64,000 nucleotides of DNA, from contig QPMI01000039.1 in NCBI GenBank assembly GCA_004431415.1, forward strand, positions 496,001 to 560,000. The letters are read 5' to 3'. The translations under genes were made by a program, and so were the position numbers. The first letter of the stretch is position 1, and each line of letters begins with the position of its first letter. This stretch comes from Cyanophora paradoxa CCMP329. Taxonomy: Eukaryota; Plantae; Glaucophyta. A model generated the notes under the pieces. It had not been told where the DNA came from. It did no database searches and worked only from the letters and a program-made list of their open reading frames with translations. Positions 17,574 to 52,029 of this stretch are shown here, in pieces.

Positions 17574-17893
17574 GGCCGGCCTGGAACCGCTCGCCGCTCC
17601 TCGAGAGAGCTGCTAGCTAGGTTCGGAATCCCTCTGGATGGTCGTGCCGCCACGATGGGCCTCCGAACTCCCAGCGGTCTGCCGTCACACTGCTCGCCGA
17701 TCCTAGCGCTTCTGCGGCACTCTGCTATGCGTGCAGCGCTCTGGGACACGTGCTGGCGCCGCTCGACCAGCGACGACCAGTGGACCACTTCGCCCCGGGT
17801 ACAGGGGAGCCCGGTTGGACATCGAGCGCGTCTCGTTCGATCGCAGCGCTAGCGGCTCCGGAGCGCGGCAGGTTGCATGCGCGCTGCACCCAG
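17574..17893. promoter_or_regulatory. Putative bidirectional promoter between the CH/Ig/VWA gene and ALG3 (copies at 27878-28178 and 37838-38158)
   Basis: ~320 bp between divergent start codons; retained in all three copies. Confidence 0.5.
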
Positions 17894-18590: not shown

Positions 18591-18599
18591 ACCCCGCGA

Positions 18600-19280: not shown

Positions 19281-19359
19281 CCCGCGGGGCGGGCCCCGCG
19301 CGCGCCCCCGGACCGCCGCCCGTAGAGCTAGCCGCGCTCGTGTCGGAATAGATGTGTAG

Positions 19360-20587: not shown

Positions 20588-20937
20588 ATGTCGACCGAGA
20601 CCGAGGCCGCCCCCGCGACCCTTCCCGAGGTCCTCCTCGCCCCCGTGCGCCCCCGCTCCGCCCCGCGCCCTCCGCCCGCCCCCGCCCTCACGCGCGCGCT
20701 CTGCCGAGCGCAGGAGGCCACCGCCGCTGAGCCCGCGATCGCCGCGGTGCGCCGCCGCGGGCCTCGCTGCACACCCGTCCGCAGCCTCTTGACCGCCGCC
20801 CGCGGCCGCAGGAACCGGAGCCGGAGGCGCCGGTGCCGGCGGACGAGCTGCTCGTCGAGATCCTCGGCAACCACAGCGACGTGCGCGCGCCGGCCGCGCC
20901 CCTCGAGAGCTCGCGCTGCCGCCTCATGCTGCTGGCA

Positions 20938-20970
<33 letters not shown>

Positions 20971-23900
20971 TAACGGCGGCGACGGGGGGAACGGCGGGAA
21001 CGGCGGGGACAACAACCCGGGCGGCCCGTGCGCCGTCGTCGCCGGCGACCTGCCCGGCTACGAGGACCTCGAGTCGCCGTGCGCCGCCGCCGCGGCCGCC
21101 CCCGCCACCGCCACCGCCGCCCAACGATTTCGCCGACGCGGTCGGGCGGGCGGCGGCGGGGGCAGGGTGGCGCGGCTGGCGTACACGATGCAGTTCGCGG
21201 TGACGCCGGCGCTGCTGGAGCCGGTCCTCCTGGGTCTCGGCTACGACCTGGCGGGCGTGGACGAGGAGCAGATCGTCTACAACATCCAGGGCGACGCCAG
21301 CGACTGGAACGCCGTCTTCGGCCCGGGCGGGCCCTCCAACTTCCTCAACGAGGACGACGCAAGCCGCCCCGCCCCGCCCTCCGGCCCCCGCCCGCCCGCC
21401 GCCGATCGTGACGCGCCGGCCGGGGCGCAGCTGACGGAGTTCCTCGAGCGCCCCGAGGCGCGCTTCGCGTGGGAGGAGAATCCCCGCTTCGACACGGCCC
21501 GCGAGATGGCGCAGGCCGTCATCGCCGTCTACGACGGTGCCCAGCCGCCCGCCGCCGACTCGAGCTCGCGCCTTCCGCGGCCTCCGGATCCGCTCAACCC
21601 CGCTCGCAGGCCAGACGCTCCAGTTCAACGGCACTTACGCGAACTACCAGGGCAGCGCCCCGGACTGCCTCCTCCACATCGCCGAGTGGCGCGCCCTCCC
21701 GACGCCGGGCCGCCGGCGCGCCGGCCCCGCAGCTGACGGCCGCGCAGGCGCAACTGCGGCTCGAAGCCCTTCGCCGAGCCTGAGTGCAAGGAGACTCCGG
21801 ACCCGGAGCCGCCGGTCGACCCCAAGGACCCCTGGTGCGCCGCCGTGCTTGTCCGCGTCGCCCGCCTGTGCGTGCTGACGCCGGGGCCCGGCGCGCAGCG
21901 ACTTCTGCTCGGAGGGGTGCGAGAAGGGCGACCTGAAGCAGGTGGACTGTCCGTGCCCCGCGGAGCACGAGTACACGCACGGCTCGCTCGAGGCCAACGC
22001 GAAGATCATCGCTGGCGGCGAGGACGGCTGCTGCACCGAGGCCCGCCCGCCCCGCCGGCCCGCACGGGCAGGGCCTCAGGCATCTGACCTGCGGTGCGCG
22101 CGCAGGCGAAGGAGCTGCTGGCGGAGATCACGCAGGACCGCTGCCAGACGACGCCCTGCTCCGAGCCCGACGGTGTCAAGGTCTACGAGGCCGAGTACAA
22201 GCGGCCCTTCAAGGGTGCCCCCGCCCGCCCCGCCCCGCCCCGCCTGCGCCGCTCCGCACCCGCCGACGGGCCGCAGTGATCGGCGAGGTGAAGGACTGCG
22301 GGGAGAAGAAGTTCTACGGTGACGCCCTCTACACCAACGAGGCCGAGCGCTGCGGCACCGTCGGGTGCGCGGGGCGGCGCCTGGCCGGCCGCCCCGCCTC
22401 TTGACGGCGGCGCGCAGGGCCACGCAGAAGTTCAAGATCACCGGGACGGACTACAAGGTGGTGGACTACAAGGAGACGGGCACGATCGAGACGACGCAGC
22501 AGGTCGAGACCGACAAGGTCTACTTCGGCAAGACCAAGGTCTTCTGTGCGCGGTTCCCGCCTCCCGTCTTCCGTCCGGGGCGCCCCTGAGCGGCCGCTGC
22601 AGACGACAAGACGCCGATCCTGAAGGAGCTCGACTGCCCCGAGTACAAGGTGCGCCCCGCCCGCCCGCCCGCGGCCGCCGCGTGCCCGTCGCGGCGCCGA
22701 GCGCCCCCGCCGCAGTTCGGGGACCTGCACTTCGCGGCGACCTGCGAGCCGAAGATTGACTACGAGAGCGTGGTCATCCCGGAGCCGGGCAAGTGCGACC
22801 CCGTCGACAAGTACTACTGCCACGTCGGCCCGTGCGAGGACCTCACCGTCTGCAACGTCGACCTCGAGGTCTGCCCGCACGACGAGGAGTGCTGCGAGAG
22901 CGACTTCAAGACCCCCTGCGAGCTGCCCAAGTGCGCCGGCGCCCCGCCGGCCGCCCGCCCCGCCCCGCCACACCGGCCGCCGCCGACTGTGCGCAGGATC
23001 GCGCTGCACGGGTGCGAGCAGCTGGCGACGCTGCCGCGCGTGTGCGAGGAGCAGCTGCCGTGCGGCTTCAAGGAGGCGCTGGAGTGCGGCGGCTGGAGCC
23101 TCGAGGACGTCTTCGAGGCGAAGCCCTTCCACGCGTGCACCGAGCAGACCGTCCACGTCGACAAGTGCCTCAACGTGACGATCGCCGAGCAGCCCTACAA
23201 GCTCACCTACACGGTCCGCCGAGCCCTCGGGGCGGGCGCGCCGGCTCCTGCCGCTCTGCGCTCACGGGGCGCCCGGCGAGCAGACGAAGCAGCCGGTCGA
23301 CTGGAAGGCTTACGTGGAGAAGCATGGCCACGCGGACTGGACGCAGGAGGGCAAGGCCTGGGTGCGCGCGGCGCCCTCCCCGCCTGCCCCGGGGCCCGGC
23401 CCGGCCACAGCTGAGGCGCGCCGGACCGCAGGCCGAGGGCTGCTACAAGCAGTACAACGACGTCAAGATCAAGGGCTACTTGTGCGCCCTCCCCGCCCCC
23501 CAGCGCAACTGGGACGCGGGCCGGCCTGACGGGCGGGCAGCATCAAACCGGCGCTGGAGACAGGCACCATCAAGACCTACGTCTTCCAGAAGCCCGACGC
23601 GCCGAACGAGCCGTGCGAGAAGTACGTGCCCGGCGACTGCTGCGAGAACGAGGTGCGCCCCCGGCGCAGGGCGCGGGGCTGCCTCGCGCGGCTCCGCCCA
23701 CGCCGACGCTGCGGGCGCAGGTGAAGCCGTGCGGAGAGGTGCGCTTCTGCGACTACAACTTCGACAACGCCAAGTGGAAGGAGGCGGACGAGCACGGCTG
23801 CAAGAAGCAGTGCACCTTCAACGTCTGCGAGGACGTGCACAACAAGCACACCGAGTGCACGCCCACCGGCGTCATCGAGTTGTGCGTCCGCCGCCCCACG

Positions 23901-25438
23901 CCGTCGGCCGGCGGCCCCTTCTCACTCGCGATCGGCGGGGGCGGCAGCGCGCCGGCGTTCTGCCCGAAGTACGCCAAGTGCCCCGTCCTCCTCAAGATCA
24001 AGCCCCAGCACGAGTGCATCGACAAGGCGCGCTGCCCCGCAGCTCGATCCAGCCCGCCCTCGATGCTGACGAGGGCGCCTCGCACGATCGGCGGGCGCAG
24101 TGCGAGGTGCTGGAGCAGTTCCTGGACGGGGACGCGCTCCACTCGGACGATATCGGCGTGCCGAAGGACGAGCTCTACGACGACGAGTACTTCTGCGTGC
24201 GCCCCGCCCCGCCCCGCCCCGCGACCTTCGGCCCACTATCACGCTTTGACGCCCCGCGGCAGGTGCGCAAGTGCAAGCTCATCGACGGCACGTACGAGCA
24301 GGTCGGGCCGTACCCGGCGTGCGACGGCGAGGGGAACTGCGACCCGTGCGACCCGGACCTGCCGGCGAGCAAGGGCGGCTGGGCGGAGGACGTCGTCTGC
24401 TGCGACGAGAAGAACCACAAGGCGCAGGAGTTCTACGAGAAGCTGCCGTGCTACTACGAGCTCGTTGCCAAGCTCTGCGAGCTCAAGGCCCGCCCCGCCC
24501 GCCCGCGCGGCGCTGCCGGCCCTGACCGCGAGTGCGCCTGCAGCTGTACAAGCTCGAGACGCTGAAGGAGCTCGGCGCCAAGAAGGAGGCGGTGCGCGCG
24601 CAGCCTCCCCGGCCCCGCGGGCCCTGCCGCGGCCTAGCTGACGCCGGCTGCAGCTCATCGAGCTCGAGTGCGAGCTGGAGGAGCTGAAGCACGACTACCC
24701 CCTCGACGAGAAGGCGATCGCGTGCCTGGAGAAAGACATTGAGGAGTACAAGTGCGACATCGCGCGGCTGTACGGCGGCCTGGAGGAGCTGAAGGGCCAG
24801 ATCGAGTGCCTGCGCGGGGAGGTCACCGAGAAGCAGGCCGAGCTCAAGTGCCTCCTCGAGGAGAGCCACATCGAGCGTGCGCCCCGCCCCGCCCCGCCCG
24901 CCCCGCCCCGCCCGGTCCGGCCCCCGAGCCCGAGCGCGGGGCGGCAGTGAAGCACGACCCGTTCGACATCTGCAACGCGACGCACCACGACTGCTGCGCG
25001 GCGGAGATCGAGCACGTCGTCAAGCTCCTCTCGACCCCGGACGCCGAGGTCGCCAGCGTCCCGCAGGAGGAGATCGACGCCGCCGCCGCCGTGCGCCCCG
25101 CCGGCCTCCCCGCGCCCGCCCCGCGATTCATCTGACAGGCTCGGTGCGGGGGCAGATCGTCGACAAGCTCGCCGTCGGCGAGGCCGTCACCTTCGAGCCG
25201 AGCGCCGACGTCGAGCCCGTCGCCCCGGCCGCCGATCCGGTGCCCGCTGCTCCATCTCCTCACAGCTCGCGCTTGCCCTCTAAGCCCTTCCCCGCGGCAG
25301 GCTGTCGCGGAGTTCGACGTCGACAGTGCATCGCTCACGGACAGCGGCGCGGAGGAGAGCGACTCTGGCGAGGAGGGCGCGGCGGCCGACGAGGCCGCCG
25401 CCATCGACGCCGCCGTCGCCGGCATCGCCGTCTACTGA
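20588..25438 (+). CDS. Uncharacterised acidic Cys-rich protein, copy 1 (type A cassette: GGN repeat + ~130-aa putative globular insert); about 27 coding exons, C-terminal coiled coil
   Basis: Exons splice in frame from MSTETEAAPATLPE|EATAAEPAIAA|EPEPEAPVPADELLVEILGNHSD| through DFCSEGCEKG...CPCPAEHEYTHG...CCESDFKTPCELPK...LECELEELKHDYPLDEKAIACLEKDIEEYKCDIARL to AAVAGIAVY*. Strong G/C third-position codon bias; consistent donor, branch and acceptor signals. Confidence 0.85.
20939..21010 (+). repeat. Coding (GGC GGC AAC/GAC)n repeat encoding GGNGGDGGNGGNGGDGGNGGNGGD
   Basis: Eight 9-bp units read directly. Confidence 0.9.
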
Positions 25439-25844
25439 GCGCCCCGCCCTCGCCGCCGGCCCGCCGGCGCCGGCGCCCCGACTTGTACCATAGCATGTTG
25501 TAACACCCGCCCCTTTTTCGTTTAATTTAGTTCTCGCGCTTATTGTGATCACTTGATCATAAACCGAAGCTGTGATCATGAGCTGAGACTCGCGATCATC
25601 GAATCGCCGATCGAGTCCAGATCGGTGACTCTGATGATGATCACTAGAAATCGCTTGGGACTTAAGCAGCTCATCACGGGATCCACGGCCGCGAGCCGCA
25701 GGTGCACTCCGAGGCTTAGGCTTGCTTCATGCGCATGAATGTTGAAGAAGTTGCGCCTATTCTGGTTTCTGCCGTTGCAATTTAAATTTTCGATATCCGA
25801 ATTCAACTTCAATACGATACGAGTTGAACGCGAGAGCTCGAGCC

Positions 25845-27877
25845 CTACTGCGCCTTGGAGCGGCCGGACTTCGAATTCTCGCGGCCCTCGCGGCCCTCGT
25901 CGGCGGGGGCGGGGCGGAGGAGGAGGGCGAGGAGGACGGCGACGTGGGCGGCAGCGACGACGCCGGACGCGCCCCGCCGCACGAAGCACACGTCGCACTC
26001 CTCCAGCCCTACGCGCGCGCGCGCCGCCGCCTCGCCGTCAGACAAGATTCCAGGTAGAGCGAGCGGGGAAGGCAGTCGACGCACCAGGGTCGATGACGCA
26101 ATCCGCGCTGACGTCCTGCAAGGCGGGCGGGTGAGCCGGACGGGCCACGAGCTCGAGTCGAGTCGCGTGGGCGGGGCGGGGCGGGCCTCGGGGCAGCCGC
26201 TCCACTGGTTCCAGGCGAGCTCGAGGACAAGGCCGAGGCCGGCGATGGCGGGGAGCGGGAGGCCGTGGAGGGCGAGCCCGAGGGGCAGCGTCTGCTGGTA
26301 CCACACGAAGAACGAGTCTGCCGCGCCGCCGCGTCATGATCAGCCGAGTCGAGAGCGGGGCGCGGCGGCAGACAGTGGAGGGAGCGGGCGAAGGCGACGC
26401 CGACGAGGTTCGAGGCGACGAGCACGCCCGCTGTCCACCGCGGGCCCGGCCCGGGCGCCCTCGCGCGGTGGTCCGCTCTGGAGAGAAGGGCGCGGCGGAG
26501 GCCAGAGAGGCCGAGCCAGCCGCCGGGGCGCAGCGCGAGGGCGGCGAGGGCGGCGAGGTGGCCGGCGAGGAGCGCCCCGTGGAAGACCCGCGAGGCGAAG
26601 AGGTCGGGCGGCAGGAACTTCCAGTTGTACGAGAGCTGCCCGCCTGTTGTTAGGGCGCCGCGGCGGCGCCGCCGGGCCGTGCGGGGCCGCACCATGTGGT
26701 GGAAGCGGCGGCCGAACTCGAAGGCAGCGCCCAGGAACGAGCCTGCGCGCCCGGGCGCTCAGTGCGCGGGTGCGCCGGCGGGGGCGAGGGCGGGCGGGGC
26801 GGCGGGGCGCGCGGGGCCGGTGGAGGAGGAAAGGGATGCCGAGAAGGGGCTGCAGGGCCGCCGCCCCGAGGAGCGCGCCGGCCGCGCCGAGCGGGCCCCG
26901 CGCCCGCAGCAGCACGACCGCCAGGCCGGGGCGTACAGCAGCGCCGACATCTTCACGCTGCCGGTACGCGGTTGGGGGGGGGGAGACCTGGAGGGGTACG
27001 GGGCGGGGACCTGACGGCGAGGGAGAGGAGGAAGGCGGCGGCGACGGGGCGGCCGCGGACGACGGCCGCGTGGAGCGCGAGGTGCGCGAGGGTCACCTGC
27101 GGCGGCGTCGGCGTCCGCGGGCGGGGGCGGGGCCGGGGCGAGGCGGGCCTGCCAGCAGTCGTTGAAGAGACCGTTCACGAACACGTTTCGCGTGCGCACA
27201 GCGACGTACGTCAGCCCGCAGAGCAGCCACGGGCGCGAGCCGGGCTGCGGAATCGCTGAGCCGCGATCGAGTGGGAACGCAAGCGCTGAGTGGCGGCGGG
27301 CGGGGGCGGCACCGGAGCGGCGGCCTCGTAGATGCCGGAGACAAGCCACGCGTTCAGCGCCTGCACCGCCGTGTGGGGCCGCGGCCGATCGCATGAGCAG
27401 CTGCAGCTGCATGCGCAGAGCGGACCTGCAGCACGCCGTAGATCGCCTGCAGCAGCGCGACGCGCCGCCCGCCGTCGGAGATGTAGTGCAGCGCTACGTG
27501 AATCCACACGTGCCCGCCCGGATACACCAGCGGCCTGGCGGGATCCGGAGCGCTCGCGTCGGGTTCGAAATTCGAGCGCGCGCGCGCTGCAGCTGGCGCG
27601 GACCCCGTGCGGCCCTCGATGGCCTCGTAGTCGCGTTCTCCACTGACGATGTGATCGACCTGGTCCATGTAGGCCCACCTGCGAGCGCGGCGGGAGGCAC
27701 AGATCAGCACTGCGCGGCCCGCGGGCGGCCAGAGCCCGACGCGGACCAATCGATCGCATGGAAAGGCCCGTGGATCGCGAAGGCGACGTTCAGGACGATA
27801 TCCAGCAGCAGCAGCCACGTCCGCCAGCCGAGCCCCGCGAGCCGAGTCGCGGGCGCTCCGACCGCCGCCTTCGCCAT
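25845..27877 (-). CDS. ALG3: ALG3-family Dol-P-Man alpha-1,3-mannosyltransferase, divergent, full length; one apparent -1 frameshift in a homopolymer at ~26930
   Basis: IDWWAYMDQV...GERDY...GRTGPLVYPGGHVW, GLFNDCW, SLAVSVKMSALLYAP, AFEFGRRF, YNWKFLPPDLFASRVFHGALLAGHL, SNLVGVAFARSLH, FFVWYQQTLP, LELAWN follow the ALG3 motif order; ends RSKAQ*. Confidence 0.9.
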
Positions 27878-28178
27878 CTGGGTGCAGCGCGCATGCAACT
27901 GGCCGCGCTCCGGAGCCGCTAGCGCTGCGATCGAACGAACGAGCTTCAAGTTGAAGTCTCCTGTACCCGGGGCGAAGTGGTCGAGCGGCGCCAGCACGTG
28001 TTCTAGAGCGCTGCACGCATAGCATAGTGCCGCAGAAGCGTTAGGGACGGCGAGCAGCGCGACCGAAGAGCGCTGGGAGTTCGGAGGCCCAGCGTTGCCG
28101 TACGGCACGACCATCCAGAGAGATTCTGAACCTAGCTAGCAGCTCTTTCGAGCAACGGTGAGCGGTTCCAGGCTGTCC

Positions 28179-30250
28179 ATGGCGTCGTTCGGGCGGGCGC
28201 CAGCTCCTGTCTTCGGCTCCACGCGCAAAGTGAACGCGCTCGATGCTCAGGGCTACAGGGTGCGTTCCTCCTTGCGATGCAGTCGAAGGCGGCGTATGTC
28301 GCGGCCGTGGCTTCTGAGCTGGCCGCTTGGACCCCGCGGCGTACACCCAGCGCCCGCTGAGATGCGCGTTCGGCAGGTCGCCGGTGCGAGCGGCATGCAC
28401 ACGGTGGATCCTGAGGAGGAGGCCGGTGCGCCGCCGCTCGCTCGCTCCGGACGCCCCGCCCGTCGACACGCGTCGGGGGCCGCAGCGTACCTCGAGTGGT
28501 TCAACAAGTCGTTACAGGACGACGCGGACATCGGCTCGTTCGTGCCGCTCGCCCCGGACCAGCTCTTCGCGCTCCTCGTCGAGCCCTACGTCTGGTGGTG
28601 CGCCGCGGGCCGCCCCGCCCGCCCCGGATTTGATCCGCGTCCGTTGCGAGCGCGGGGGCGGCGCAGCAAGCTCCTGAACCGCCCCTCGCCGGGGGTCTTC
28701 ACGGCGGAGCAGGTCCGCTCCATGAAGGGCCAGGTCCGCCCCCCGCCGCCCCTCGCGCCCCGCCGCAGGTTCGGAGCTGACGCCGGGCGGCAGACGCGGC
28801 GCATCCAGCAGGTGAACAACCTGAACGCCATCATTCAGAATATGCAAATGCGAGCCGCCGCGTCTCCAACTTCGGCAGCGACATGAAGGCGGGCCCAGCG
28901 CCCCGCGTACCCCCCCTCGCCGCCTCACGCTGTACCCAGGACTCGGAAGTGTACACGCACCTGCTGTACCAGGTCGGGCGCTTCGACGGCTGCGACATGA
29001 GTCCCCTGCAGGCGCCCCCGCCCCGCCCGCCCGCCAGCACGGGCCGCCCGCTCGGGCCGCCCGCGCTGACCCGCCGGCTGCAGAACCGGAACCTGGTGGA
29101 CCGGGCGGCCGCGGTGCTGGTGCAGGCGGACAAGATCGGCTGCCGCCGCTTCGTCAAGAAGGAGACCATCGTCGCCGTGCGCCGTACCCCCCGGGGCGGG
29201 GGGGGGGGGTAGGGGCTCACGCGGAGCGCAGGGGAACGAGCGCCTGAACCTCGCGTTCGTCGCGACCATCTTCAACGAGCGCAACGGGCTGAACCTGCCA
29301 CTGGGTACGCGATCGGATCCCCGCCCCCGCCGGGCGCTGGGGTACGCGGCACGATCCGCCTTCGCCGCAGGCCAGTGCACGTTCGAGCCGAAGGCGATCC
29401 AGCTGACGGCCCCGGAGGGGGGGTACGCGACGGCCTCGTTCAAGATCTGGAACCAGGGGCGGGGCCCGATGCTCTGGGCCGCCGACCACCCGCACTGGAT
29501 CCGGACGGCGGAGCCGCGGCAGGGGTACCTGGAGTGCGGGGCGTGGCAGACGGTGCACCTGACCGTGCTCTGCGCGACGGCGGGGGACGTGCGCGGGGCG
29601 CTCGAGATCACGGGCGGGGAGGCGCCGGCGGCCCTGCCCGTCTCGGTCCGCGTGGTGCCCGGGGTGCTGGAGATCGAGCCGGCGGAGCTGGTCTTCGAGG
29701 TGCCCGAGCTCGGCCAGTGCCGCCGCCAGCTCTCCATCCGCAACGCGTGCGCCCCGCTCCAGAATACCCTTTGGAGCCCGTCCGACGCGTACCCTCCCGC
29801 AGCGGCGCAGGATCGATGACGTGGCGCCTGGAGATGGGGCCGGGACCGGTACCCGTGCCCCCTTCCTCCCCGCCCCACTTCTCACCTTACCCCCCACGGC
29901 AGGGCCCCGCCCGGGGCGAGGACGCAGTACCTCGAGGCGACGAGCGGGGGGGTACGCTGGAGGCGAGGCAGGCGGCCTGCATCGAGGTGAGCGCAGCGGC
30001 AGCGGGCCAGGGCGGCATCGGAGCGCCGCGCTGACTTGGCCTGGGGCCAGGCGCGGGCGCCGCGGCAGCCGGAGGGCTTCGGGACGCGGCGCGCCTCGGT
30101 GGTCGTGAGCGGCGGGGGTTACCGCCGCGAGATCCCCTGCACCATCTCCTCCCTCCAGGGCCCGCCCCTCACCTCTCCCTCCCGCCTTCGCTTTTGAGCG
30201 CCTGGCGCAGGGGTGCTGCGGGTGGACCCGCCCCAGCTGCTCTTAGAGGT
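28179..30250 (+). pseudogene. Truncated duplicate of the CH/Ig/VWA gene 5' part, with a ~550-bp internal deletion and frameshift
   Basis: Inverted copy of 14931-17573. At ~28835-28850 it jumps from NAII to the SRRVSNFGSD exon through filler tatgcaaatg, giving a stop at ~28884. Ends at the start of the third Ig repeat. Confidence 0.9.
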
Positions 30251-30633
30251 GCATGATCCGAATTTCATCGAGCCATTCGCAATTGCAAAGCCAAACAGTT
30301 TGTTCGAGCTTCGGACCCGGATCCGGATCCGTTCGCGCATCCGCAACTTCAGTCACACGCGCATTCATGAATTCGAAGCTAGTGCACGTGCCCAGCCCGT
30401 GCACGCGCACGTGCCACGGTGGCCGTACGCGTGGGAAGCTGCGGAAGTCCCACGCATGTGCAAGTGTAATACCGACCCCCAGCTCGAGTCTCATACCATG
30501 TACGAGGCATCCGTTAAATTGATCACGATAAGCGAAAAAACGAAGAAAGGGCAGGGTGATTATAATTACAATACGCTATTGTACACGTGCCTGCTCGCGG
30601 GCGGCGGCGGGGCGGCGATTGAGGGCGGGGCGC

Positions 30634-33600: not shown

Positions 33601-35101
33601 TAGTCCACCACCTTGTAGTCCGTCCCGGTGATCTTGAACTTCTGCGTGGCCCTGCGCGCCGCCGTCAAGAGGCGGGGCGGCCGGCCAGGCGCCGCCCCGC
33701 GCACCCGACGGTGCCGCAGCGCTCGGCCTCGTTGGTGTAGAGGGCGTCACCGTAGAACTTCTTCTCCCCGCAGTCCTTCACCTCGCCGATCACTGCGGCC
33801 CATCAGCGGTGCAGGCGGGTGGGGCGGGGCGGGCGGGGGCACCCTTGAAGGGCCGCTTGTACTCGGCCTCGTAGACCTTGACGCCGTCGGGCTCGGAGCA
33901 GGGCGTCGTCTGGCAGCGGTCCTGCGTGATCTCCGCCAGCAGCTCCTTCGCCTGCGCGCGCCCCGCACGTCAGATGCCTGAGGCCCTGCCCGTGCGGGCC
34001 GGCGGGGCGGGCGGGCCTCGGTGCAGCAGCCGTCCTCGCCGCCCTTGATGATGGTGGCGTTGGCCTCGACCGAGCCGTGCGTGTACTCGTGCTCCGCGGG
34101 GCACGGGCAGTCCACCTGCAGGGGGTACTCGCTCTCCTCGCACCCCTCCGAGCAGAAGTCGCTGCCCGCCGCGGCCGGCGTCAGAGAAGGCGGGCGGGCT
34201 TGGCGCGAGGGCGGCGGGCCGGTGCACCAGGGGTCCTGGTCGCCGTGGTGCGACTCCTCGCCGTCGTGCTCGGAGCCGTCGTGCTCCGACGGCTCCGACG
34301 ACTCCGACGGCGGGGGGTACTCGTCGTCGTGCTCCGACTCCCCGTGCTCCTCGCCGTCGGAGTGCTCCTCCTGCGCGGCGGAGATCGGCCCGTGCAGCCG
34401 GCGGCTCTCGGCCCCGCCCGCCCACCTCGCCGTTCTCCTCGCCAGAGCCGTAGCCGTTGGAGGCCTCCTCCTCGTGGCCGTCGCCGTTCTCAGAGCCGCC
34501 CTCGTGCTGCGAGCCGGCGCTGGTCAGCAAAAGCGGCACCCTGCCCCGCGGCCCGGCCCCCCACCTCGCCGTTCTCTTCGCCAGAGCCGTAGCCGTTGGA
34601 GGCCTCCTCCTCGTGGCCGTCGCCGTTCTCAGAGCCGCCCTCGTGCTGCGAGCCGGAGCTGGTCAGCGAACGCGGCGCCCCGCCCCGCGGCCCGGCCCGC
34701 TTGCCTCGCCGTCCTCGCCCCCCTCCTCCGACTCGCCGCCCTGCGCGGCCTCGGCGTCGGCCGCCTGCGAGGCCGACGCTGTTTTGGAGGGCGGGCGCAC
34801 GTCGCTGTGGTTGCCGAGGATCTCGACGAGCAGCTCGTCCGCCGGCACCGGCGCCTCCGGCTCCGGTTCCTGCGGCCGCGGGCGGCGGTCAAGAGGCTGC
34901 GGACGGGTGTGCAGCGAGGCCCGCGGCGGCGCACCGCGGCGATCGCGGGCTCAGCGGCGGCGGTCCCCTCCTGCGGCAGGCGGAGCGCGCGCGCGTGAGG
35001 GCGGGGGCGGGCGGAGGGCGCGGGGCGGGGCGGGGCGGGGCGCACGGGGCGAGGAGGACCTCGGGAAGGGTCGCGGGGGCGGCCTCGGTCTCGGTCGACA
35101 T
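30634..35101 (-). CDS. Cys-rich protein copy 2 (type B acidic His/Glu/Gly cassette); three single-base homopolymer deletions (pseudogene or assembly errors)
   Basis: Near-identical to 41284-45752 but one base shorter in G/C runs at ~31370, ~31735 and ~33160. Confidence 0.75.
34426..34645 (-). repeat. Tandemly duplicated 81-nt phase-0 exon with its intron (HEGGSENGDGHEEEASNGYGSGEENGE x2); also at 45082-45300
   Basis: Exons 34565-34645 and 34426-34506, each preceded by gctgaccagc.ccggctcgcag. Confidence 0.9.
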
Positions 35102-36490
35102 GCTGCGCGGCGCCCGCCCGCCCCGTCAGCGCCCCGCCCGCCGGCGCCGGCGGCCCGCGCATCCGTCCGCACGTTCAAGAGCGGCTTCGCACGAACGAAC
35201 GGGTTTGAAGACGAACTGCGGCGGCGGCGCGCGTGGTCAGCGGAAGGCGCCGCCGCCATCGGCGGCTAAGTTGGCGGGGCAGCGCTTTGGCAAACTTCGC
35301 GGGGCCGCGGGGAGGCTAGGCCTGGGCTACGCGCGCGCAGAGCTCGCCCTTGGCCGCCGGGCGGGACGGACCTTGAGAGCAGCGATCCGAGATCAGCGAA
35401 CTGCGGCGGCGGGGCGAGGCCGCGCGCTCTTGTAGGGCCCGCTGACCGCACTCGGAGCTGGTTCTGGTCTGCCGTCGGTATGACTTCCGAGTCCGCTGCT
35501 GGCGGCGCGAAACGCTCTCAGTCTCGATAGTGTCGATAACCAGAGCGCACGGATCAGAGCGGCTGCAGATCTAGAGAGCTGGCTCGCCGCGCGAGCTGAC
35601 CGCGAACGAACCGGCGCGAGTGGACCACAACTGACAGGGGTCGAACGAATAAAAAAGAGAAAAAGCGAGGAAAAAAAGCTCCGAAAATGAACCGGTTCTG
35701 TGGACCAAAGCTCCGACAGCCTCCGAGACCAGTTCTGACGGGTCAAGTCACGCCTCAAGTGATTCAGGTCACGGACGGAAAAGCTCCGAATAGCGAAAAA
35801 AGGAGTCGTCAACTTGAAAGTCCGGTTCGGGTTTAAAAATTTACCGCTCAAGCTCCGAAAACAGCAGCGAAAGTTCCGAAGAGGGGTCAATTGCAATGCG
35901 AACCAGAAGAGACGACAAGCGGCCGGCAAGTGCGGGACGGTCATTCTAAGACCACACATAAACTCGGAGGGGCGGTCGCGCTAAAACCACATAAAGACTC
36001 GGAGAGTTCCGAGAGTAAAAATAGTTTACGTTCTGAACGCGTTCCGATGATCGTCTCTACGAAAATAGTTCTCTAAGAGAGCGGGCCCCAGTCAAAGAAT
36101 CGGAAGCTGCGAAACAGAAACAGCTGAAACCGAACAAAACATTTCAACTGGTTCTCTTAGACTTTTGAAGGATCGCGGTCAAAATGAATGGGGGGGCCCC
36201 GGGCGGGGTAGAGAGGAGTGGAGGAGTGGAATTGGGGGGGGGGGGGGGGGGGGGGGGGAACGAAGGGACAGCCCGTCTGAGATCAAATTGCAAAGGACGC
36301 GAAAGGGGGCGACGGGGAAGATCGCGGTGGCGAGGGAGCTTTGGAATAAGAAGGAAAGAGAAACGGAGGCGCGCGTGAGAGCCAGCGGGGACGCAGCCGC
36401 GCAAAAGGCGACTCCACATCTATTCCGACACGAGCGCTGCTAGCTCTACGGACGGCGGGCCGGGGGCGCGCGCGGGGCCCGCCCCGCGGG

Positions 36491-37098
36491 CTACTCGTGG
36501 CGCCGGGCGAGCCCGGCCGGCATCTGGCTCTGAAGCGACTGCCGCAGCGCCTGCCGCCCTCCCGCGCCCGTTGCCGCCGCTGTTGCTGCCGGGGCCGCCG
36601 CCGCGGGCCCTTGCCCTCGGGGCGGGCGGCCGCGGCCCCGCCGGAGCCGCGGGGGTGGACGGGCGGCGGCTGCGCTCGCTGCTCCGCTGGCGGCGGCGCG
36701 GAGCTTGGCCTGGTAGTGCTCGTTGAAGTCGAGGCGGAAGATGAAGCCCTGGAAGCCCAGCGCCCCCTCGTGCGCCCCCGCGCCCCCCGCGCCCCCCGCC
36801 CCGCCCGCCCCGCCCGCCGGCCCCGCCAGCATCCCCAGCAGGTTCGCCATCCCCTGCGCGTACTCCGCCTGCGCCTGCGAGCAACGCCGGCATCGGCCCG
36901 GGGTACGCGGGGCGGGGGGGGGGCCGGGCGCGGGGGGGTACGCGCCTGGACGATGGCGGGGACGACGGTGGAGGGTACGTGCTCGCGGATGGAGGGCCCA
37001 AGGCCTCCGCCCTCCCCGTCGTAGTACTGCGCGCCCCCGCTCGGCCGAAGAACGAAGGATAGAGGGGGGTACAGACCTTCTCGGCCTCGTCGGAGGCG
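36491..37098 (-). pseudogene. TUBGCP3: GCP3 3'-terminal fragment, second copy
   Basis: Direct near-copy of ~47127-47724 with FRLDFNEHY. Confidence 0.85.
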
Positions 37099-37837
37099 AT
37101 ACGGGGCGGGGACCTGACGGCGAGGGAGAGGAGGAAAGCAGCTGCGACGGGGCGGCCGCGGACGACGGCCGCGTGGAGCGCGAGGTGCGCGAGGGTCACC
37201 TGCGGCGGCGTCGGCGTCCGCGGGCGGGCGGGCGGGCGGGGCCGGGGCGGGGCGGGGCCGGGGCGGGCCTGCCAGCAGTCGTTGAAGAGACCGTTAAACT
37301 TTCACGGAGGCAACGTCCATCAGCCCGCTGGCGAGACCGATCCCGATCGCGTCCCGCACAGCAGCCACGGGCGCGAGCCGAAACACCAAAACGAAGCGGG
37401 CGCGAGAAAGGACCCAGCACCAACGCGAAGCGCCCATCGTCGGAGATGTAATGCAGCGCGATGTGAGTCCACGGTGCCCGCAGAAGCCGCCTTGGTGTCT
37501 GGCGGTAGCGTCTGCTGGGTCAACGGCGTCTAGTGCGAGCTGCCGTACGTGTGGGGATATTGTGCGGCCCTCGATGGCCTCGTAGTCGCACTCCCCGTTG
37601 ACGATGTGATCGACCTGGTCCATATACGCCCACCTGCGAGCGCGGTGCGAGGTACAGCGCTGTATAGCAGCGCGCGGCCCGCGGGCGGCCAGAGCCCGAC
37701 GCGGACCAGTCGATCGCATGGAAAGGCCCGTGGATCGCGAAGGCGACGTTCAGGACGATATCCAGCAGCAGCAGCCACGTCCGCCAGCCCAGCCCCGCGA
37801 GCCGAGTCGCGGGCGCTCCGACCGCCGCCTTCGCCAT
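37099..37837 (-). pseudogene. ALG3: ALG3-like 5' fragment with replaced internal segments, fused to the GCP3 3' fragment
   Basis: MAKAAVGAP...HAIDW and WAYMDQVDHIVNGECDYEAIEGRT are kept. The PLVYP region and parts of 37300-37430 are replaced by unrelated sequence. Confidence 0.85.
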
Positions 37838-38158
37838 CTGAGTGCAGCGCGCATGCAACTGGCCGCGCTCCGGAGCCGCTAGCGCTGCGATCGAACGAGA
37901 AGAGCTTCAAGTTGAAGTCTCCTGTACCCGGGGGCGAAGTGGTCGGACTGTGGCCCGACTGGTCGAGCGGCGCCAGCACGTGTTATTCCAGAGCGCTGCA
38001 CGCATAGCAGAGTGCCGCAGAAGCGCTACCAGCGGCGAGCAGCGTGACGGCAGACCGCTGGGAGTTCGGAGGCCCAGCGTGGCGGCACGACCATCCAGAG
38101 GGATTCCGAACCTAGCTAGCAGCTCTCTCGAGGAGCGGCGAGCGGTTCCAGGCCGGCC

Positions 38159-40773
38159 ATGGCGTCGTTCGGGCGGGCGCCAGCGCCAGTCTTCGGGTCG
38201 ACGCGCAAAGTGAACGCGCTCGATGCTCAGGGCTACAGGGTGCGTTCTTCCTTCCGATGCAGTCGAAGGCGGCGCATGTCGCGGCCGTGGCTTCTGAGCT
38301 GGCCGCTTGGACCCCGCGGCGTACACCCAGCGCTCGCTTAGATGCGCGTTCGGCAGGTCGCCGGTGCGAGCGGCATGCACACGGTGGATCCTGAGGAGGA
38401 GGCCGGTGCGGTGCCGCTCGCTCGCTCCGGCCGCTCCGCCCGTCGAGACGCGTTGCGGGCCGCAGCGTACCTCGAGTGGTTCAACAAGTCGTTCCAGGAC
38501 GACGCGGACATCGGCTCGTTCGTGCCGCTCGCCCCGGACCAGCTCTTCACGCTCCTCGTCGAGCCCTACGTCTGGTGGTGCGCCGCCCCGCCCGCCCCGG
38601 ATTTGATCCGCGTCCGTTGCGAGCGCGGGGGCGGCGCAGCAAGCTCCTGAACCGCGCCTCGCCGGGGGCCTTCACGGCGGAGCAGGTCCGCTCCATGAAG
38701 GGCCAGGTCCGCTCCCGCCGCCCCTCGCGCCCCGTCGCGGGTTCGGAGCTGACGCCGGGCGGCAGACGCGGCGCATCCAGCAGGTGAACAACCTGAACGC
38801 CATCATCGAGAAGGTGCGCTCGGGGTCGGGCCGGCGGTCAGCGCCGCGCCGAGCGCGCCGCAGGCCCGCGCCATCGGCTGCCAGCTCGTCAACATCTCTG
38901 GCGCCGACATCGCCGACGGTGCCCCGAGCCCCGCGGCCGCCCCGCCGCCCCGCAGCCGCCTCCGCGGCCTCACACGCGCACACAGGGAGCAAGACCCTCA
39001 TCCTCTCGATGCTCTGGCAGGTCCTGGAGGTCGGTACCCCCTACTGCTCCCCCGCCCCCCCGCTCTATCCTTATCTCCCCTACCCCCACAGCGCGGCCTG
39101 CTCTCCAGCATCTCGCTGAACCGCCAGCCCGGTGCGGGCCGGCCCCCGCCCGGCCACTTGCCTCCTCCGCCGCCCGCCGAGGCGCCCGCGCAGAGCTTCG
39201 GAAGCTGCTGGAGCGGGGCGAGACGATCGAGGACCTGCAGCACCTGCCCCCCTACGACCTCCTCCTCCGCTGGGTCAACTGTGCGCCCCGCCGCCCGTCT
39301 CAACTCTCCTGCTCTCGGCCCCGCCGACGCGCCCCCGCGACCCAGACCACCTCGCGAACTCGGACACGAGCCGTCGCATCACCAACTTCGGCAGCGACAT
39401 CAAGGCGCGCCCGGCGCCCCGCGTACCCCCCCGCCGCCTCACGCTGTACCCAGGACTCGGAGGTGTACACGCACCTGCTGTACCAGGTCGGGCGCTTCGA
39501 CGGCTGCGACATGAGCCCCCTGCAGGCGCCCCCGCCCCGCCCCCCCGCCAGCCCACCAGCCCGCCTGCTCGCGTCGCCCGCGCTGACCCGCCGGCCGCAG
39601 AACCGGAACCTGGTGGACCGGGCGGCCGCGGTGCTGGTGCAGGCGGACAAGATCGGCTGCCGCCGCTTCGTCAAGAAGGAGACCATCGTCGCCGTGCGCC
39701 GTACCCCCCGGGCGGGGGGGAGGGGGTAGGGGCTCACCCGGGGCGCAGGGGAACGAGCGCCTGAACCTCGCGTTCGTCGCGACCATCTTCAACGAGCGGA
39801 ACGGGCTCAACCTGCCCCTGGGTACGCGATCGGATCCCCGCCCCCGCGGGGGTACGCGGCACGATCCGCCTTCGCCGTAGGCCAGTGCACGTTCGAGCCG
39901 AAGGCGATCCAGCTGACGGCCCCGGAGGGGGGGTACGCGACGGCCTCGTTCAAGATCTGGAACCAGGGGCGGGGCCCGATGCTCTGGGCCGCCGACCACC
40001 CGCACTGGGTCCGCACGGCGGAGCCGCGGCAGGGGTACCTGGAGTGCGGGGCGTGGCAGACGGTGCACCTGACCGCGCACTGCACGACGGCGGGGGACGT
40101 GCGCGGGGCGCTCGAGATCACGGGCGGGGAGGCCCCGGCGCCGCTGCCCGTCTCCGTCCGCGTGGTGCCCGGGGTGCTGGAGATCGAGCCGGCGGAGCTG
40201 GTCTTCGAGGTGCCCGAGCTCGGGCAGTGCCGCCGCCAGCTCTCCATCCGCAACGCGTGCGTCCCCCTCCAGGATACCCTTTGCAGCCCGTCCGACCGCG
40301 CACCCCTCCCGCAGCGGCGCCGGTGCGATGACGTGGCGCCTGGAGATGGGGCCGGCCGACCCTCGGGACCGGTTCCCGTGCCCCCTTCCTCCCCGCCCCA
40401 CTTCTCACCTTACCCCCCGCGGCAGGGCCCCGACCGGGGCGAGGACGCAGTACCTCGAGGCGACGAGCGGGGGGGTACGCTGGAGGCGAGGCAGGCGGCC
40501 TGCATCGAGGTGAGCGCAGCGGCAGCGGGCCAGGGCGGCATCGGAGCGCCGCGCTGACTTGGCCTGGGGCCAGGCGCGGGCGCCGCGGCAGCCCGAGGGC
40601 TTCGGCACGCGGCGCGCCTCGGTGGTCGTGAGCGGCGGGGGGTACCGCCGCGAGATCCCCTGCACCATCTCCTCCCTCCAGGGCCCGCCCCTCACCTCTC
40701 CCTCCCGCCTTCGCTTTTGAGCGCCTGGCGCAGGGGTGCTGCGGGTGGACCCGCCCCAGCTGCTCTTCGAGGT
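38159..40773 (+). pseudogene. 3'-truncated duplicate of the CH/Ig/VWA gene (complete CH1-CH2 + two Ig repeats); may encode a shortened protein
   Basis: Inverted copy of 14931-17573 without the internal deletion; same breakpoint (ctgctcttcgaggt|gcatgatcc) as the 28179-30250 copy. Confidence 0.8.
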
Positions 40774-41283
40774 GCATGATCCGAATTTCATCGAGCCATT
40801 CGCAATTGCAAAGCCAAACAGTTTGTTCGAGCTCCGGACCCGGATCCGGATCCGTTCGCGCATCCAAGGCGCAGTAGGGCTCGAGCTCTCGCGTTCAACT
40901 CGTATCGTATTGAAGTTGAATTCGGATATCGAAAATTTAAATTGCAACGGCAGAAACCAGAATAGGCGCAACTTCTTCAACATTCATGCGCATGAAGCAA
41001 GCCTAAGCCTCGGAGTGCACCTGCGGCTCGCGGCCGTGGATCCCGTGATGAGCTGCTTAAGTCCCAAGCGATTTCCAGTGATCATCATCAGAGTCACCGA
41101 TCTGGACTCGATCGGCGATTCGATGATCGCGAGTCTCAGCTCATGATCACAGCTTCGGTTTATGATCAAGTGATCACAATAAGCGCGAGAACTAAATTAA
41201 ACGAAAAAGGGGCGGGTGTTACAACATGCTATGGTACAAGTCGGGGCGCCGGCGCCGGCGGGCCGGCGGCGAGGGCGGGGCGC

Positions 41284-44200
41284 TCAGTAGACGGCGATGC
41301 CGGCGACGGCGGCGTCGATGGCGGCGGCCTCGTCGGCCGCCGCGCCCTCCTCGCCAGAGTCGCTCTCCTCCGCGCCGCTGTCCGTGAGCGATGCACTGTC
41401 GACGTCGAACTCCGCGACAGCCTGCCGCGGGGAAGGGCTTAGAGGGCAAGCGCGAGCTGTGAGGAGATGGAGCAGCGGGCACCGGGTCGGCGGCCGGGGC
41501 GACGGGCTCGACGTCGGCGCTCGGCTCGAAGGTGACGGTCTCGCCGACGGCGAGCTTGTCGACGATCTGCCCCCGCACCGAGCCCGTCAGATGAATCGCG
41601 GGGCGGGCGCGGGGAGGCCGGCGGCGCGCACGGCGGCGGCGGCGTCGATCTCCTCCTGCGGGACGCTGGCGACCTCGGCGTCCGGGGTCGAGAGGAGCTT
41701 GACGACGTGCTCGATCTCCGCCGCGCAGCAGTCGTGGTGCGTCGCGTTGCAGATGTCGAACGGGTCGTGCTTCACTGCCGCCCCGCTTGAACCGCAGCGG
41801 GGCGGGCCGGGGCGGGCCGGGGCGGGGCGGGGCGGGGCGCACGCTCGATGTGGCTCTCCTCGAGGAGGCACTTGAGCTCGGCCTGCTTCTCGGTGACCTC
41901 CCCGCGCAGGCACTCGATCTGGCCCTTCAGCTCCTCCAGGTCCCCGTACAGCCGCGCGATGTCGCACTTGTACTCCTCAATGTCTTTCTCCAGGCACGCG
42001 ATCGCCTTCTCGTCGAGGGGGTAGTCGTGCTTCAGCTCCTCCAGCTCGCACTCGAGCTCGATGAGCTGCAGCCGGCGTCAGCTAGGCCGCGGCAGGGCCC
42101 GCGGGGCCGGGGCGGCTGCGCGCGCACCGCCTCCTTCTTGGCGCCGAGCTCCTTCAGCGTCTCGAGCTTGTACAGCTGCAGGCGCGCTCGCGGTCAGGGC
42201 CGGCAGCGCCGCGCGGGCGGGCGGGGCGGGCCTTGAGCTCGCAGAGCTTGGCGACGAGCTCGTAGTAGCACGGCAGCTTCTCGTAGAACTCCTGCGCCTT
42301 GTGGTTCTTCTCGTCGCAGCAGACGACGTCCTCCGCCCAGCCGCCCTTGCTCGCCGGCAGGTCCGGGTCGCACGGGTCGCAGTTCCCCTCGCCGTCGCAC
42401 GCCGGGTACGGCCCGACCTGCTCGTACGTGCCGTCGATGAGCTTGCACTTGCGCACCTGCCGCGGCGCGTCAGGAGGGGCCGAGCGAGCGGACCGGGCGG
42501 CGGGCGGGACGCGGGGCGGGGGGCGGGGCGGGGCGCACGCAGAAGTACTCGTCGTCGTAGAGCTCGTCCTTCGGCACGCCGATATCGTCCGAGTGGAGCG
42601 CGTCCCCGTCCAGGAACTGCTCCAGCACCTCGCACTGCGCCCGCCGATCGCGCGAGGCGCCCTCGTGAGCATCGAGGGCGGGCTGGATCGAGCTGCGGGG
42701 CAGCGCGCCTTGTCGATGCACTCGTGCTGGGGCTTGATCTTGAGGAGGACGGGGCACTTGGCGTACTTCGGGCAGAACGCCGGCGCGCTGCCGGCCCCCG
42801 CCGATCGCAAGTGAGACGGGGCCGCCGGCCGACGGCGTGGGGCGGCGGACGCACAACTCGATGACGCCGGTGGGCGTGCACTCGGTGTGCTTGTTGTGCA
42901 CGTCCTCGCAGACGTTGAAGGTGCACTGCTTCTTGCAGCCGTGCTCGTCCGCCTCCTTCCACTTGGCGTTGTCGAAGTTGTAGTCGCAGAAGCGCACCTC
43001 TCCGCACGGCTTCACCTGCGCCCGCGGCGTCGGCGCGGGCGGAGCCGCGCGAGGCAGCCCCGCGCCCTGCGCCGGGGGCGCACCTCGTTCTCGCAGCAGT
43101 CGCCGGGCACGTACTTCTCGCACGGCTCGTTCGGCGCGTCGGGCTTCTGGAAGACGTAGGTCTTGATGGTGCCCGTCTCGAGCGCCGGCTTGATGCTGCC
43201 CGCCCGTCAGGCCGGCCCGCGTCCCCGTTGGGCTGGGGGGCGGGGAGGGCGCACAAGTAGCCCTTGATCTTGACGTCGTTGTACTGCTCGTAGCAGCCCT
43301 CGGCCTGCGGTCCGGGGCGCCTCAGAGAGGGCCGGGCCCGGGGCACGTTTGCGCCGCGCCGCCCGCACCCAGGCCTTGCCCTCCTGCGTCCAGTCCGCGT
43401 GGCCATGCTTCTCCACGTAAGCCTTCCAGTCGACCGGCTGCTTCGTCTGCTCGCCGGGCGCCCCGTGAGCGCAGAGCGGCAGGAGCGGGCGCGCCCGCCC
43501 CGAGGGCTCGGCGGACCGTGTAGGTGAGCTTGTAGGGCTGCTCGGCGATCGTCACGTTGAGGCACTTGTCGACGTGGACGGTCTGCTCGGTGCACGCGTG
43601 GAAGGGCTTGGCCTCGAAGACGTCCTCGAGGCTCCAGCCGCCGCACTCCAGCGCCTCCTTGAAGCCGCACGGCAGCTGCTCCTCGCACACGCGCGGCAGC
43701 GTCGCCAGCTGCTCGCACCCCTGCAGCGCGATCCTGCGCACAGTCGGCGGCGGCCGGTGTGGCGGGGCGGGGCGGGCGGCCGGCGGGGCGCCGGCGCACT
43801 TGGGCAGCTCGCAGGGGGTCTTGAAGTCGCTCTCGCAGCACTCCTCGTCGTGCGGGCAGACGTCGAGGTCGACGTTGCAGACGGTGAGGTCCTCGCACGG
43901 GCCGACGTGGCAGTAGTACTTGTCGACGGGGTCGCACTTGCCCGGCTCCGGGATGACCACGCTCTCGTGGTCGATCTTCGGCTCGCAGGTCGCCGCGAAG
44001 TGCAGGTCCCCGAACTGCGGCGGGGGCGCTCGGCGCCGCGAAGGGCACGCCGGCGGGCGGGCGGGCGGGGCGCACCTTGTACTCGGGGCAGTCGAGCTCC
44101 TTCAGGATCGGCGTCTTGTCGTCTGCAGCGGCCGCTCAGGGGCGCCCCGGACGGAAGACGGGAGGCGGGAACCGCGCACAGAAGACCTTGGTCTTGCCGA

Positions 44201-45752
44201 AGTAGACCTTGTCGGTCTCGACCTGCTGCGTCGTCTCGATCGTGCCCGTCTCCTTGTAGTCCACCACCTTGTAGTCCGTCCCGGTGATCTTGAACTTCTG
44301 CGTGGCCCTGCGCGCCGCCGTCAAGAGGCGGGGCGGCCGGCCAGGCGCCGCCCCGCGCACCCGACGGTGCCGCAGCGCTCGGCCTCATTGGTGTAGAGGG
44401 CGTCACCGTAGAACTTCTTCTCCCCGCAGTCCTTCACCTCGCCGATCACTGCGGCCCATCAGCGGTGCAGGCGGGTGGGGCGGGGCGGGCGGGGGCACCC
44501 TTGAAGGGCCGCTTGTACTCGGCCTCGTAGACCTTGACGCCGTCGGGCTCGGAGCAGGGCGTCGTCTGGCAGCGGTCCTGCGTGATCTCCGCCAGCAGCT
44601 CCTTCGCCTGCGCGCGCCCCGCACGTCAGATGCCTGAGGCCCTGCCCGTGCGGGCCGGCGGGGCGGGCGGGCCTCGGTGCAGCAGCCGTCCTCGCCGCCC
44701 TTGATGATGGTGGCGTTGGCCTCGACCGAGCCGTGCGTGTACTCGTGCTCCGCGGGGCACGGGCAGTCCACCTGCAGGGGGTACTCGCTCTCCTCGCACC
44801 CCTCCGAGCAGAAGTCGCTGCCCGCCGCGGCCGGCGTCAGAGAAGGCGGGCGGGCTTGGCGCGAGGGCGGCGGGCCGGTGCACCAGGGGTCCTGGTCGCC
44901 GTGGTGCGACTCCTCGCCGTCGTGCTCGGAGCCGTCGTGCTCCGACGGCTCCGACGGCTCCGACGGCGGGGGGTACTCGTCGTCGTGCTCCGACTCCCCG
45001 TGCTCCTCGCCGTCGGAGTGCTCCTCCTGCGCGGCGGAGATCGGCCCGTGCAGCCGGCGGCTCTCGGCCCCGCCCGCCCACCTCGCCGTTCTCCTCGCCA
45101 GAGCCGTAGCCGTTGGAGGCCTTCTCCTCGTGGCCGTCGCCGTTCTCAGAGCCGCCCTCGTGCTGCGAGCCGGCGCTGGTCAGCAAAAGCGGCACCCTGC
45201 CCGCGGCCCGGCCCCCCACCTCGCCGTTCTCTTCGCCAGAGCCGTAGCCGTTGGAGGCCTCCTCCTCGTGGCCGTCGCCGTTCTCAGAGCCGCCCTCGTG
45301 CTGCGAGCCGGAGCTGGTCAGCGAACGCGGCGCCCCGCCCCGCGGCCCGGCCCGCTTGCCTCGCCGTCCTCGCCCCCCTCCTCCGACTCGCCGCCCTGCG
45401 CGGCCTCGGCGTCGGCCGCCTGCGAGGCCGACGCTGTTTTGGAGGGCGGGCGCACGTCGTTGTGGTTGCCGAGGATCTCGACGAGCAGCTCGTCCGCCGG
45501 CACCGGCGCCTCCGGCTCCGGCTCCTGCGGCCGCGGGCGGCGGTCAAGAGGCTGCGGACGGGTGTGCAGCGAGGCCCGCGGCGGCGCACCGCGGCGATCG
45601 CGGGCTCAGCGGCGGCGGTCCCCTCCTGCGGCAGGCGGCGCGCGCGCGCGTGAGGGCGGGGGCGGGCGGAGGGGCGGGGCGGGGCGGGGGCGCACGGGGG
45701 CGAGGAGGACCTCGGGAAGGGTCGCGGGGGCGGCCTCGGTCTCGGTCGACAT
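41284..45752 (-). CDS. Cys-rich protein copy 3 (type B cassette), apparently intact
   Basis: Same exon chain as copy 1 outside the cassette; homopolymer lengths preserve the frame where copy 2 is shifted. Confidence 0.85.
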
Positions 45753-51958: not shown

Positions 51959-52029
51959 CTTCAAACTGAGCTCCCGGGGATGAGCCCTGGCCGGGTACAG
52001 CATCTTGTGCTGCACCGCCTTCGGCAGCG

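Follow-up and report, generated by a model that had tools for sequence, protein, structure and literature searches.

In clustered tandem gene families that evolve in concert, gene conversion stops where it meets a large heterology. A different arrangement is found in cassette-switching systems, such as shufflons, invertible phase-variation loci, the trypanosome variant surface glycoproteins (VSG) and yeast mating type. As for rearrangements, inversions with duplicated breakpoint regions have been described and interpreted with a staggered-break model (Ranz et al. 2007, PMC1885836). The locus considered here lies in a stretch of 64,000 nucleotides (nt) of Cyanophora paradoxa CCMP329 (contig QPMI01000039.1, positions 496,001 to 560,000, belonging to locus tig00000157; hereafter, the window) and consists of three copies of a Cys-rich gene that share the first three coding exons and a large core and carry one of two different segments, called here head A and head B, in between. 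We propose, with a probability of about 0.72, that a local inversion duplicated a lineage-restricted gene as a side effect and that the copies then underwent concerted evolution. At the DNA level, the locus looks like a case of ordinary duplicate-gene evolution, explained by known processes, and not like a head-swapping system.

The earlier note, made from the sequence of the window, had placed three copies sharing exons 1 to 3 and the core at the positions given in Table 1, and all three are indeed there. Its description of an inverted arrangement holds for copy 1 with respect to the others, whereas copies 2 and 3 form a direct tandem pair, copy 1 being the only inverted one. The repeated unit spans about 10.6 kb and includes truncated neighbour genes. 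The window has a GC content of 70.6% and short introns with GT/GC-AG borders; in copy 1, whose frame has a single terminal stop, the introns measure 53 to 87 nt, and GC donors occur in 4 of the 26 (20588-25438). The proximal upstream regions of copies 2 and 3 are 99 to 100% alike, and the region at 20150-20587, upstream of copy 1, resembles a 5' untranslated region (UTR) with multiple introns.

Copies 2 and 3 are already annotated, as g9688 and g9691, respectively. The homology searches used single exons or open genomic frames including intron letters as queries, which are weaker than the joined spliced protein; with a core frame, they returned a cluster of two members only, g9688 and g9691, whose letters are those of copies 2 and 3. 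No annotated protein in the range of 530 to 1685 amino acids (aa) corresponded to copy 1, which therefore seems to lack an annotation as a whole gene. The N-terminal extensions that the annotation gives to g9688 and g9691 are unlike each other and appear doubtful. No paper found in the literature names the contig in its main text.

The arrangement of the neighbours indicates how the copies may have arisen. The whole fimbrin/Ig-like gene on the left, the whole ALG3 gene in the centre and the whole gamma-tubulin complex gene on the right occur once each, and their truncated pieces are repeated (fimbrin/Ig-like is a label read from the sequence, where the Pfam match is weak and Ig-like only). If a and b denote the 3' and 5' parts of the fimbrin/Ig-like gene, c and d the 5' and 3' parts of ALG3, e the 3' flank, f the Cys-rich gene, g the spacer, h the 3' part of the gamma-tubulin complex gene and i its rest, then the present order, with the junctions J1 and J2, is a b c, J1, inverted (b to h), J2, e f g h, J1, inverted (b c), J2, e f g h i. 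Both copies of J1 hold the same ALG3-derived patch beside a 10-nt microhomology, and both copies of J2 hold the same 92-nt filler, so that each junction probably arose once. When the second unit is taken out, what is left is an inversion with both breakpoint regions duplicated, namely, a block with the 5' parts of the fimbrin-like gene and ALG3 and a block with the Cys-rich gene, the spacer and the 3' part of the gamma-tubulin complex gene, each in inverted duplicate. At J1 (18400-18720 and 37060-37420), the ALG3 5' and gamma-tubulin complex 3' fragments have the same orientation, and the left copy shows an 18-nt ALG3 patch within the gamma-tubulin complex fragment, next to the microhomology; a chimeric transcript across J1 from the ALG3 promoter is possible.

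The shared junctions suggest an ancestral order of fimbrin-like gene (-), ALG3 (+), Cys-rich gene (-) and gamma-tubulin complex gene (-), in which an inversion with duplication of both breakpoint regions would have produced two whole inverted gene copies, together with truncated neighbours. The third copy, in tandem, may then have come from a flip through the b-c repeats and a subsequent unequal crossing-over. The locus thus resembles the inversions of Ranz et al. 2007 (PMC1885836) in its inverted duplicates from both breakpoints, its truncated gene copies and its single-copy inverted centre. However, different from those cases, the duplication took in a whole gene, which was retained, a third copy stands in tandem, and conversion is ongoing; scans of metagenome, viral and prokaryote collections gave no related locus that could serve as an outgroup to polarise the events.

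Concerted evolution by gene conversion was observed both in tracts of near-identity that include introns and in a closest pair of copies that is mosaic along the block. In particular, over 4468 nt of the gene there are 13 substitutions between copies 2 and 3 (about 99.5% alike); their upstream spacers are 14.5% different, with insertions and deletions (indels) in addition, and their 3' flanks are 76% alike. Copies 1 and 3 have 182 identical nt of 3' flank and differ in 10 synonymous and 6 non-synonymous codons out of 747 in exons 10 to 27. Furthermore, their intron differences are clumped, with 14 to 16 in each of three introns and 0 to 3 in each of fifteen, a distribution (chi-square 123) that was reached by none of 20000 simulations. 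The closest pair shifts from copies 2 and 3 in the gene to copies 1 and 3 in the 3' flank, and the truncated fragments of the neighbour genes are mosaic as well. Clustered mutation could contribute to the clumping but would leave this shift of closest pair unexplained. Non-coding DNA of this duplication that escaped conversion has drifted by 15 to 25%, with many indels. Since near-identical tracts lie within diverged duplicates and the neighbours are mosaic too, the duplication is old, the sameness is recent and the process is not specific to the gene. Repeated conversion would account for the likeness of 97 to 100% seen in the cores, in most introns and in parts of the truncated neighbours. 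The mosaic identity also bears out the idea, contained in the earlier note, of a constant scaffold whose cores are evened out by conversion and whose unrelated heads stay distinct.

The heads themselves are not homologous. The local protein score between heads A and B is 47, against 51 ± 7 for shuffled sequences, and there is no significant same-strand DNA match between them; homology was accordingly rejected, in agreement with the earlier description of two non-homologous, multi-exon heads. No extra copy of either head was found within the window. Head A comprises a 9-nt repeat encoding Gly, Asn and Asp (20939-21010), a Lys-free orphan module and a Pro/Glu linker; the module, for which about 130 aa had been claimed, measures about 116 aa when delimited in the same way, and its globular nature is putative, the structure model being of low confidence. 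Head B has 114 aa, and two of its four exons stem from a tandem duplication of 139 nt that included an exon and an intron. On the left, one common phase-0 donor, that of exon 3, marks the start of both heads, and the frame is kept, as had been stated and as holds in the models of copies 1 and 3. On the right, the border falls inside the last head exon, the common sequence restarting three codons before a phase-2 intron. Past this border, the divergence of copy 1 tails off through intron 8 (about 33%) and exon 9 (10%).

Some further features of the heads deserve mention. Each holds a phase-0 GC donor with identical first six letters, located after acidic codons, which may be due to chance or may be a trace of shared ancestry. 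Lys is absent from the first 230 aa of copy 1 (20588-21760) and from the head of copy 2, head B containing 0 or 1 Lys, while the core has 9%; the scarcity of Lys in unrelated heads possibly reflects a common constraint.

It is possible to hypothesize that the segment that follows exon 3 was replaced in one lineage, either because the head A module was gained or because it was lost and an acidic tract then expanded by slippage. As conversion stops at the non-homologous stretch, both heads survive, each as part of a complete gene. In the homogenised body that includes introns, in the mosaic relationships and in the gradient of divergence beside the non-homologous part, the locus matches the clustered paralogues that evolve in concert. 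It differs from them in that its divergent part shows no homology at all and spans several exons, and in that no relatives of the protein are known. A distinct origin, in which head A came from a different gene of Cyanophora through exon shuffling, as a member of a mobile domain family present on many scaffolds, would agree with its multiple exons, its host codon bias and its start at a phase-0 intron. We regard this as highly unlikely, since the head is bounded by phase 0 on the left and phase 2 at intron 8, which departs from a symmetric exon module, and its right border lies within an exon. Moreover, neither the window nor a set of 1.84 billion cluster representatives, searched with exons 5 and 6, yielded a relative of head A; five weak matches to these exons were discarded as summed tiny repeat matches, partly to intron-derived letters.

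The earlier note had also read the heads as exchangeable parts of a dedicated system, and this part of its proposal was not supported. The window contains only two head types and no donor copy, and no repeat or specific recombination site is common to the head borders, where only matches resembling splice signals occur. All copies are whole genes with their own upstream region, which is common to them, and no silent or incomplete donor cassette was found in the window; furthermore, the right head border lies within an exon and the neighbour gene fragments show the same mosaic conversion. No recombinase was noticed among the genes read at 9000-53000, where no systematic search was made. With cassette-switching systems the locus has in common a constant part with alternative variable parts and inverted repeats able to recombine. 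However, those systems differ in their silent or promoterless donors, expression site and border sites, as opposed to two variants in complete copies here.

An invertible switch was considered as well. A crossover in the core would swap 3' ends only, whereas one in the 5' anchor that the copies share (about 19925-20891) would exchange the upstream regions that drive the two heads and turn head A on, in the manner of phase variation. The geometry of the inverted repeats permits it, the block has recombined before, and the RNA described below shows the B head type only. Nevertheless, the absence of specific border sites, the near-identity of the proximal upstream regions, from which little change of expression is expected after a flip, the private differences of copy 1 along the whole upstream region and the equally evident conversion in unrelated gene fragments make this very improbable; no isomer was observed, although contigs could not reveal one. 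The same low odds apply to a eukaryotic head switch that changes the exposed module of a Cys-rich scaffold, with further heads in other strains. We know of no such head-switching system in algae, and the significance of the locus, if long reads showed the heads to switch, would be far greater.

Independent sequence data are consistent with duplication followed by concerted evolution. In the DNA run X1, which may come from the same strain, head A is present as one exact contig of 1124 nt, which ends at the shared anchors. Its depth is 70, compared to 79 for a single-copy flank, 166 for the flank of copies 1 and 3, 126 to 183 for B-type contigs and 206 to 233 for the collapsed core; although contig depth is a rough guide to copy number, these ratios, near 1:2:3, fit an assembly with three copies. 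The near-identity of copies 2 and 3, together with the homopolymer errors of long-read type in copy 2, might suggest that haplotypes or a collapsed repeat had been set out in tandem, a possibility that the earlier note had named as fatal to its claim. This reading is hardly tenable and is already largely refuted by the exact head A contig and the depths in X1, by spacers and 3' flanks that are distinct between copies 2 and 3 and by the occurrence of J2 letters in another run (X22). Furthermore, the species is reported to be probably haploid (PMC6704402). The genome was assembled from PacBio reads and comprises 34.7 Mb of duplicated features (PMC6704402).

In copy 2, single bases are missing from six runs of G or C (about 31300-33200), and no other copy is affected. 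Three of the six losses fall in core exons 14, 22 and 24, so that the core frame breaks at codon 471; the g9688 annotation bypasses them via altered exons and lacks three stretches that g9691 has. Single-base losses in homopolymer runs are typical of consensus errors of long reads. The frameshifts are probably sequencing errors; alternatively, copy 2 may be a young pseudogene.

Two probable RNA runs answered in part the question of whether both spliced forms exist. The core is spliced as modelled, the contig gaps being equal to exon sums of 240, 175, 48 to 49 and 83 to 84 nt. The letters of the RNA contigs are of B type and their 3' end is of the type of copies 1 and 3, which together point to copy 3. 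At exon 9 (21934-21950), all the RNA depth is of B type in both runs, at a depth of 3 to 6; the assignment is based on letters of exon 9 and the core, the head B exons lying outside the compared stretch. Head A transcripts went undetected at this shallow depth, with no head A exon among the longest RNA pieces of the two runs, and the share of words from the copy 1 stretch is 0.30 to 0.31, the expectation being 0.29 to 0.37 for B only and about 0.47 with head A. Almost nothing of the locus was present in three further probable RNA runs, which suggests conditional expression. At 25520-25859, a low-depth contig of the probable RNA run X17 extends past the main transcript end, toward the convergent 3' end of ALG3.

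These RNA results, and the failure to find an annotated protein for copy 1, would suit the view that copy 1 is silent or dying, with head A as a left-over (e.g., of an ancestral N-terminal domain), the core kept intact only by conversion from the active copies and the B form alone being of importance. We consider this unlikely. Head A is beyond the reach of conversion repair, yet its five exons keep frame, splice sites and a G+C content at third codon positions (GC3) of 0.97, in a duplication whose unconverted non-coding DNA has drifted as described above; moreover, the RNA depth at the exon 9 position is only 3 to 6. That these features are kept in a head without conversion partner argues for selection. 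With GC3 of 0.96 in head B and 0.97 in the core, and with frames and splice sites intact, both heads look maintained as coding sequence. Under the proposed history of duplication and concerted evolution, the products are likely two isoforms, of which B is expressed in the sampled cultures and A is rarer or conditional.

As for the protein, the core contains 58 Cys, with two CxxC and five CC, has a net charge of -84 and shows no hydrophobic segment; a low-confidence model predicts a long helix near its C-terminal end. Only the two annotated copies were found as homologues, and a piece from the middle of the core gave nothing. No match above the curated cut-off was obtained with Pfam, NCBIfam or PHROGs, where weak coiled-coil matches only were seen, and searches of PDB sequences and of the ESM Atlas were blank or gave generic coiled-coil matches. 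Single-sequence AlphaFold models were poor (predicted local distance difference test, pLDDT, of 36 and 43), and the fold search gave nothing. Thus, in these searches, the core did not turn out to belong to a known family, which the earlier note had listed among the outcomes that would overturn it. Internal repeats were looked for in the core and are not present, and the tail does not terminate in an H-x-L-L/C motif. A signal peptide was likewise rejected, given the lack of a hydrophobic stretch and, in the 700 nt that precede copies 2 and 3, of a spliced leader in frame; copy 1 has one option for a hydrophobic leader, dependent on a start codon without counterpart in the other copies.

Cys-rich wall or surface proteins of protists include the oocyst wall proteins and the variant-specific surface proteins (VSPs) of Giardia. 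The protein described here is similar to them in its high and evenly spread Cys content, suggesting cross-linking, and differs in having no signal peptide, membrane anchor or sequence similarity, only two CxxC and no internal repeats. The epiplastins and articulins of glaucophytes (Goodenough et al. 2018, PMC6212826) are also leaderless and net negative, with a low-complexity head and tail. However, the medial domain of epiplastins has about 33% Val and Ile, a near absence of Gly and Ala and dense acid-base dyads (PMC6212826), whereas our protein is Cys-rich and lacks both a Val/Ile-rich domain of acid-base dyads and the VPV motif; its best 60-aa window has 20% Val and Ile with 25% Gly and Ala, and membership in the epiplastins was rejected. 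We tentatively suggest a leaderless, oligomeric structural scaffold, with a C-terminal coiled coil and cross-links via Cys or bound metal. Head B could serve as an acidic spacer rich in His or as a cation sponge, and head A as a binding module. The cortical plates and mucocysts of Cyanophora, described in PMC6212826 and built of little-known proteins, would be candidate sites for the protein.

Four points weigh against our interpretation as a whole. No outgroup locus was found, so that the ancestral order and the identity of the older head are deduced from the present arrangement; contig depth measures copy number only roughly; head A mRNA was not seen in two shallow assemblies of probable RNA; and the proposed function draws on composition and a low-confidence model.

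Table 1. Positions in the window of the Cys-rich gene copies, their parts and the surrounding rearranged segments
Feature	Position	Strand	Description
Copy 1	20588-25438	+	27 coding exons, 1047 aa, head A; no matching annotated protein found
Copy 2 (g9688)	30634-35101	-	Head B; three single-base deletions in assembled core exons
Copy 3 (g9691)	41284-45752	-	Head B; intact, 26 exons, 962 aa; RNA contigs match this copy best
Proximal upstream region and probable 5' UTR exons (copy 1)	19925-20587	+	About 90-97% to copies 2 and 3
Exons 1-3, common to the copies (copy 1)	20588-20880	+	53 aa, acidic, Ala/Pro/Glu-rich, no signal peptide
Head A (copy 1)	20891-21824	+	Exons 4-8, 200 aa, 4 Cys; GC3 0.97
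Head B of copy 2	34237-34790	-	Four exons of 36, 81, 81 and 143 nt; Glu/Gly/Ser/His/Asp low complexity
Head B of copy 3	44893-45445	-	Four exons, 114 aa
Common core (copy 1)	21825-25438	+	794 aa, 58 Cys, net charge -84, coiled-coil stretch near C end, acidic tail
3' flank of copy 1	25439-25859	+	Near-identical to copy 3 flank 40863-41283, 76% to copy 2; conversion tract
Left repeated block: 5' part of whole fimbrin/Ig-like gene (-) and ALG3 5' fragment (+)	14931-18590		Inverted copies at 27080-30250 and 37190-40773
Gamma-tubulin complex gene 3' fragment joined to ALG3 (J1)	18593-19330	+	Second copy at about 36380-37110 (-)
Whole ALG3 gene	25860-27800	-	3' part, present once and inverted, forms the centre of the rearrangement
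Junction J2 with 92-nt filler	40773-40865		Repeated at 30250-30342; loose contig end with J2 letters in run X22
Gamma-tubulin complex parent gene	47050-51960	-	Whole gene, present once

Among the surrounding segments, the truncated 5' copies of the fimbrin/Ig-like gene at 38132-40773 (+) and 28156-30250 (+) are about 97% alike to the parent in approximate exons; the former has few indels, and from the latter about 540 nt are deleted. A supplement of PMC6704402 lists a Trinity transcript for g9690, whose number falls between those of copies 2 and 3, and a truncated fimbrin/Ig-like product may be made. Further direct repeats occur at 2681-4104 and 7257-8650 (90%), at 303-1321 and 4349-5366 (73%) and at 52094-52779 and 56502-57148 (71%).

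Taken as a by-product of inversion followed by concerted evolution, the locus offers a clear case in which an inversion makes duplicate genes and conversion binds their bodies together while an N-terminal segment is replaced. It adds to Cyanophora an orphan protein family and, in copy 1, a gene that seems to lack annotation, and the protein is a candidate component of the cortical plates or of the mucocyst contents of glaucophytes, which are little known.

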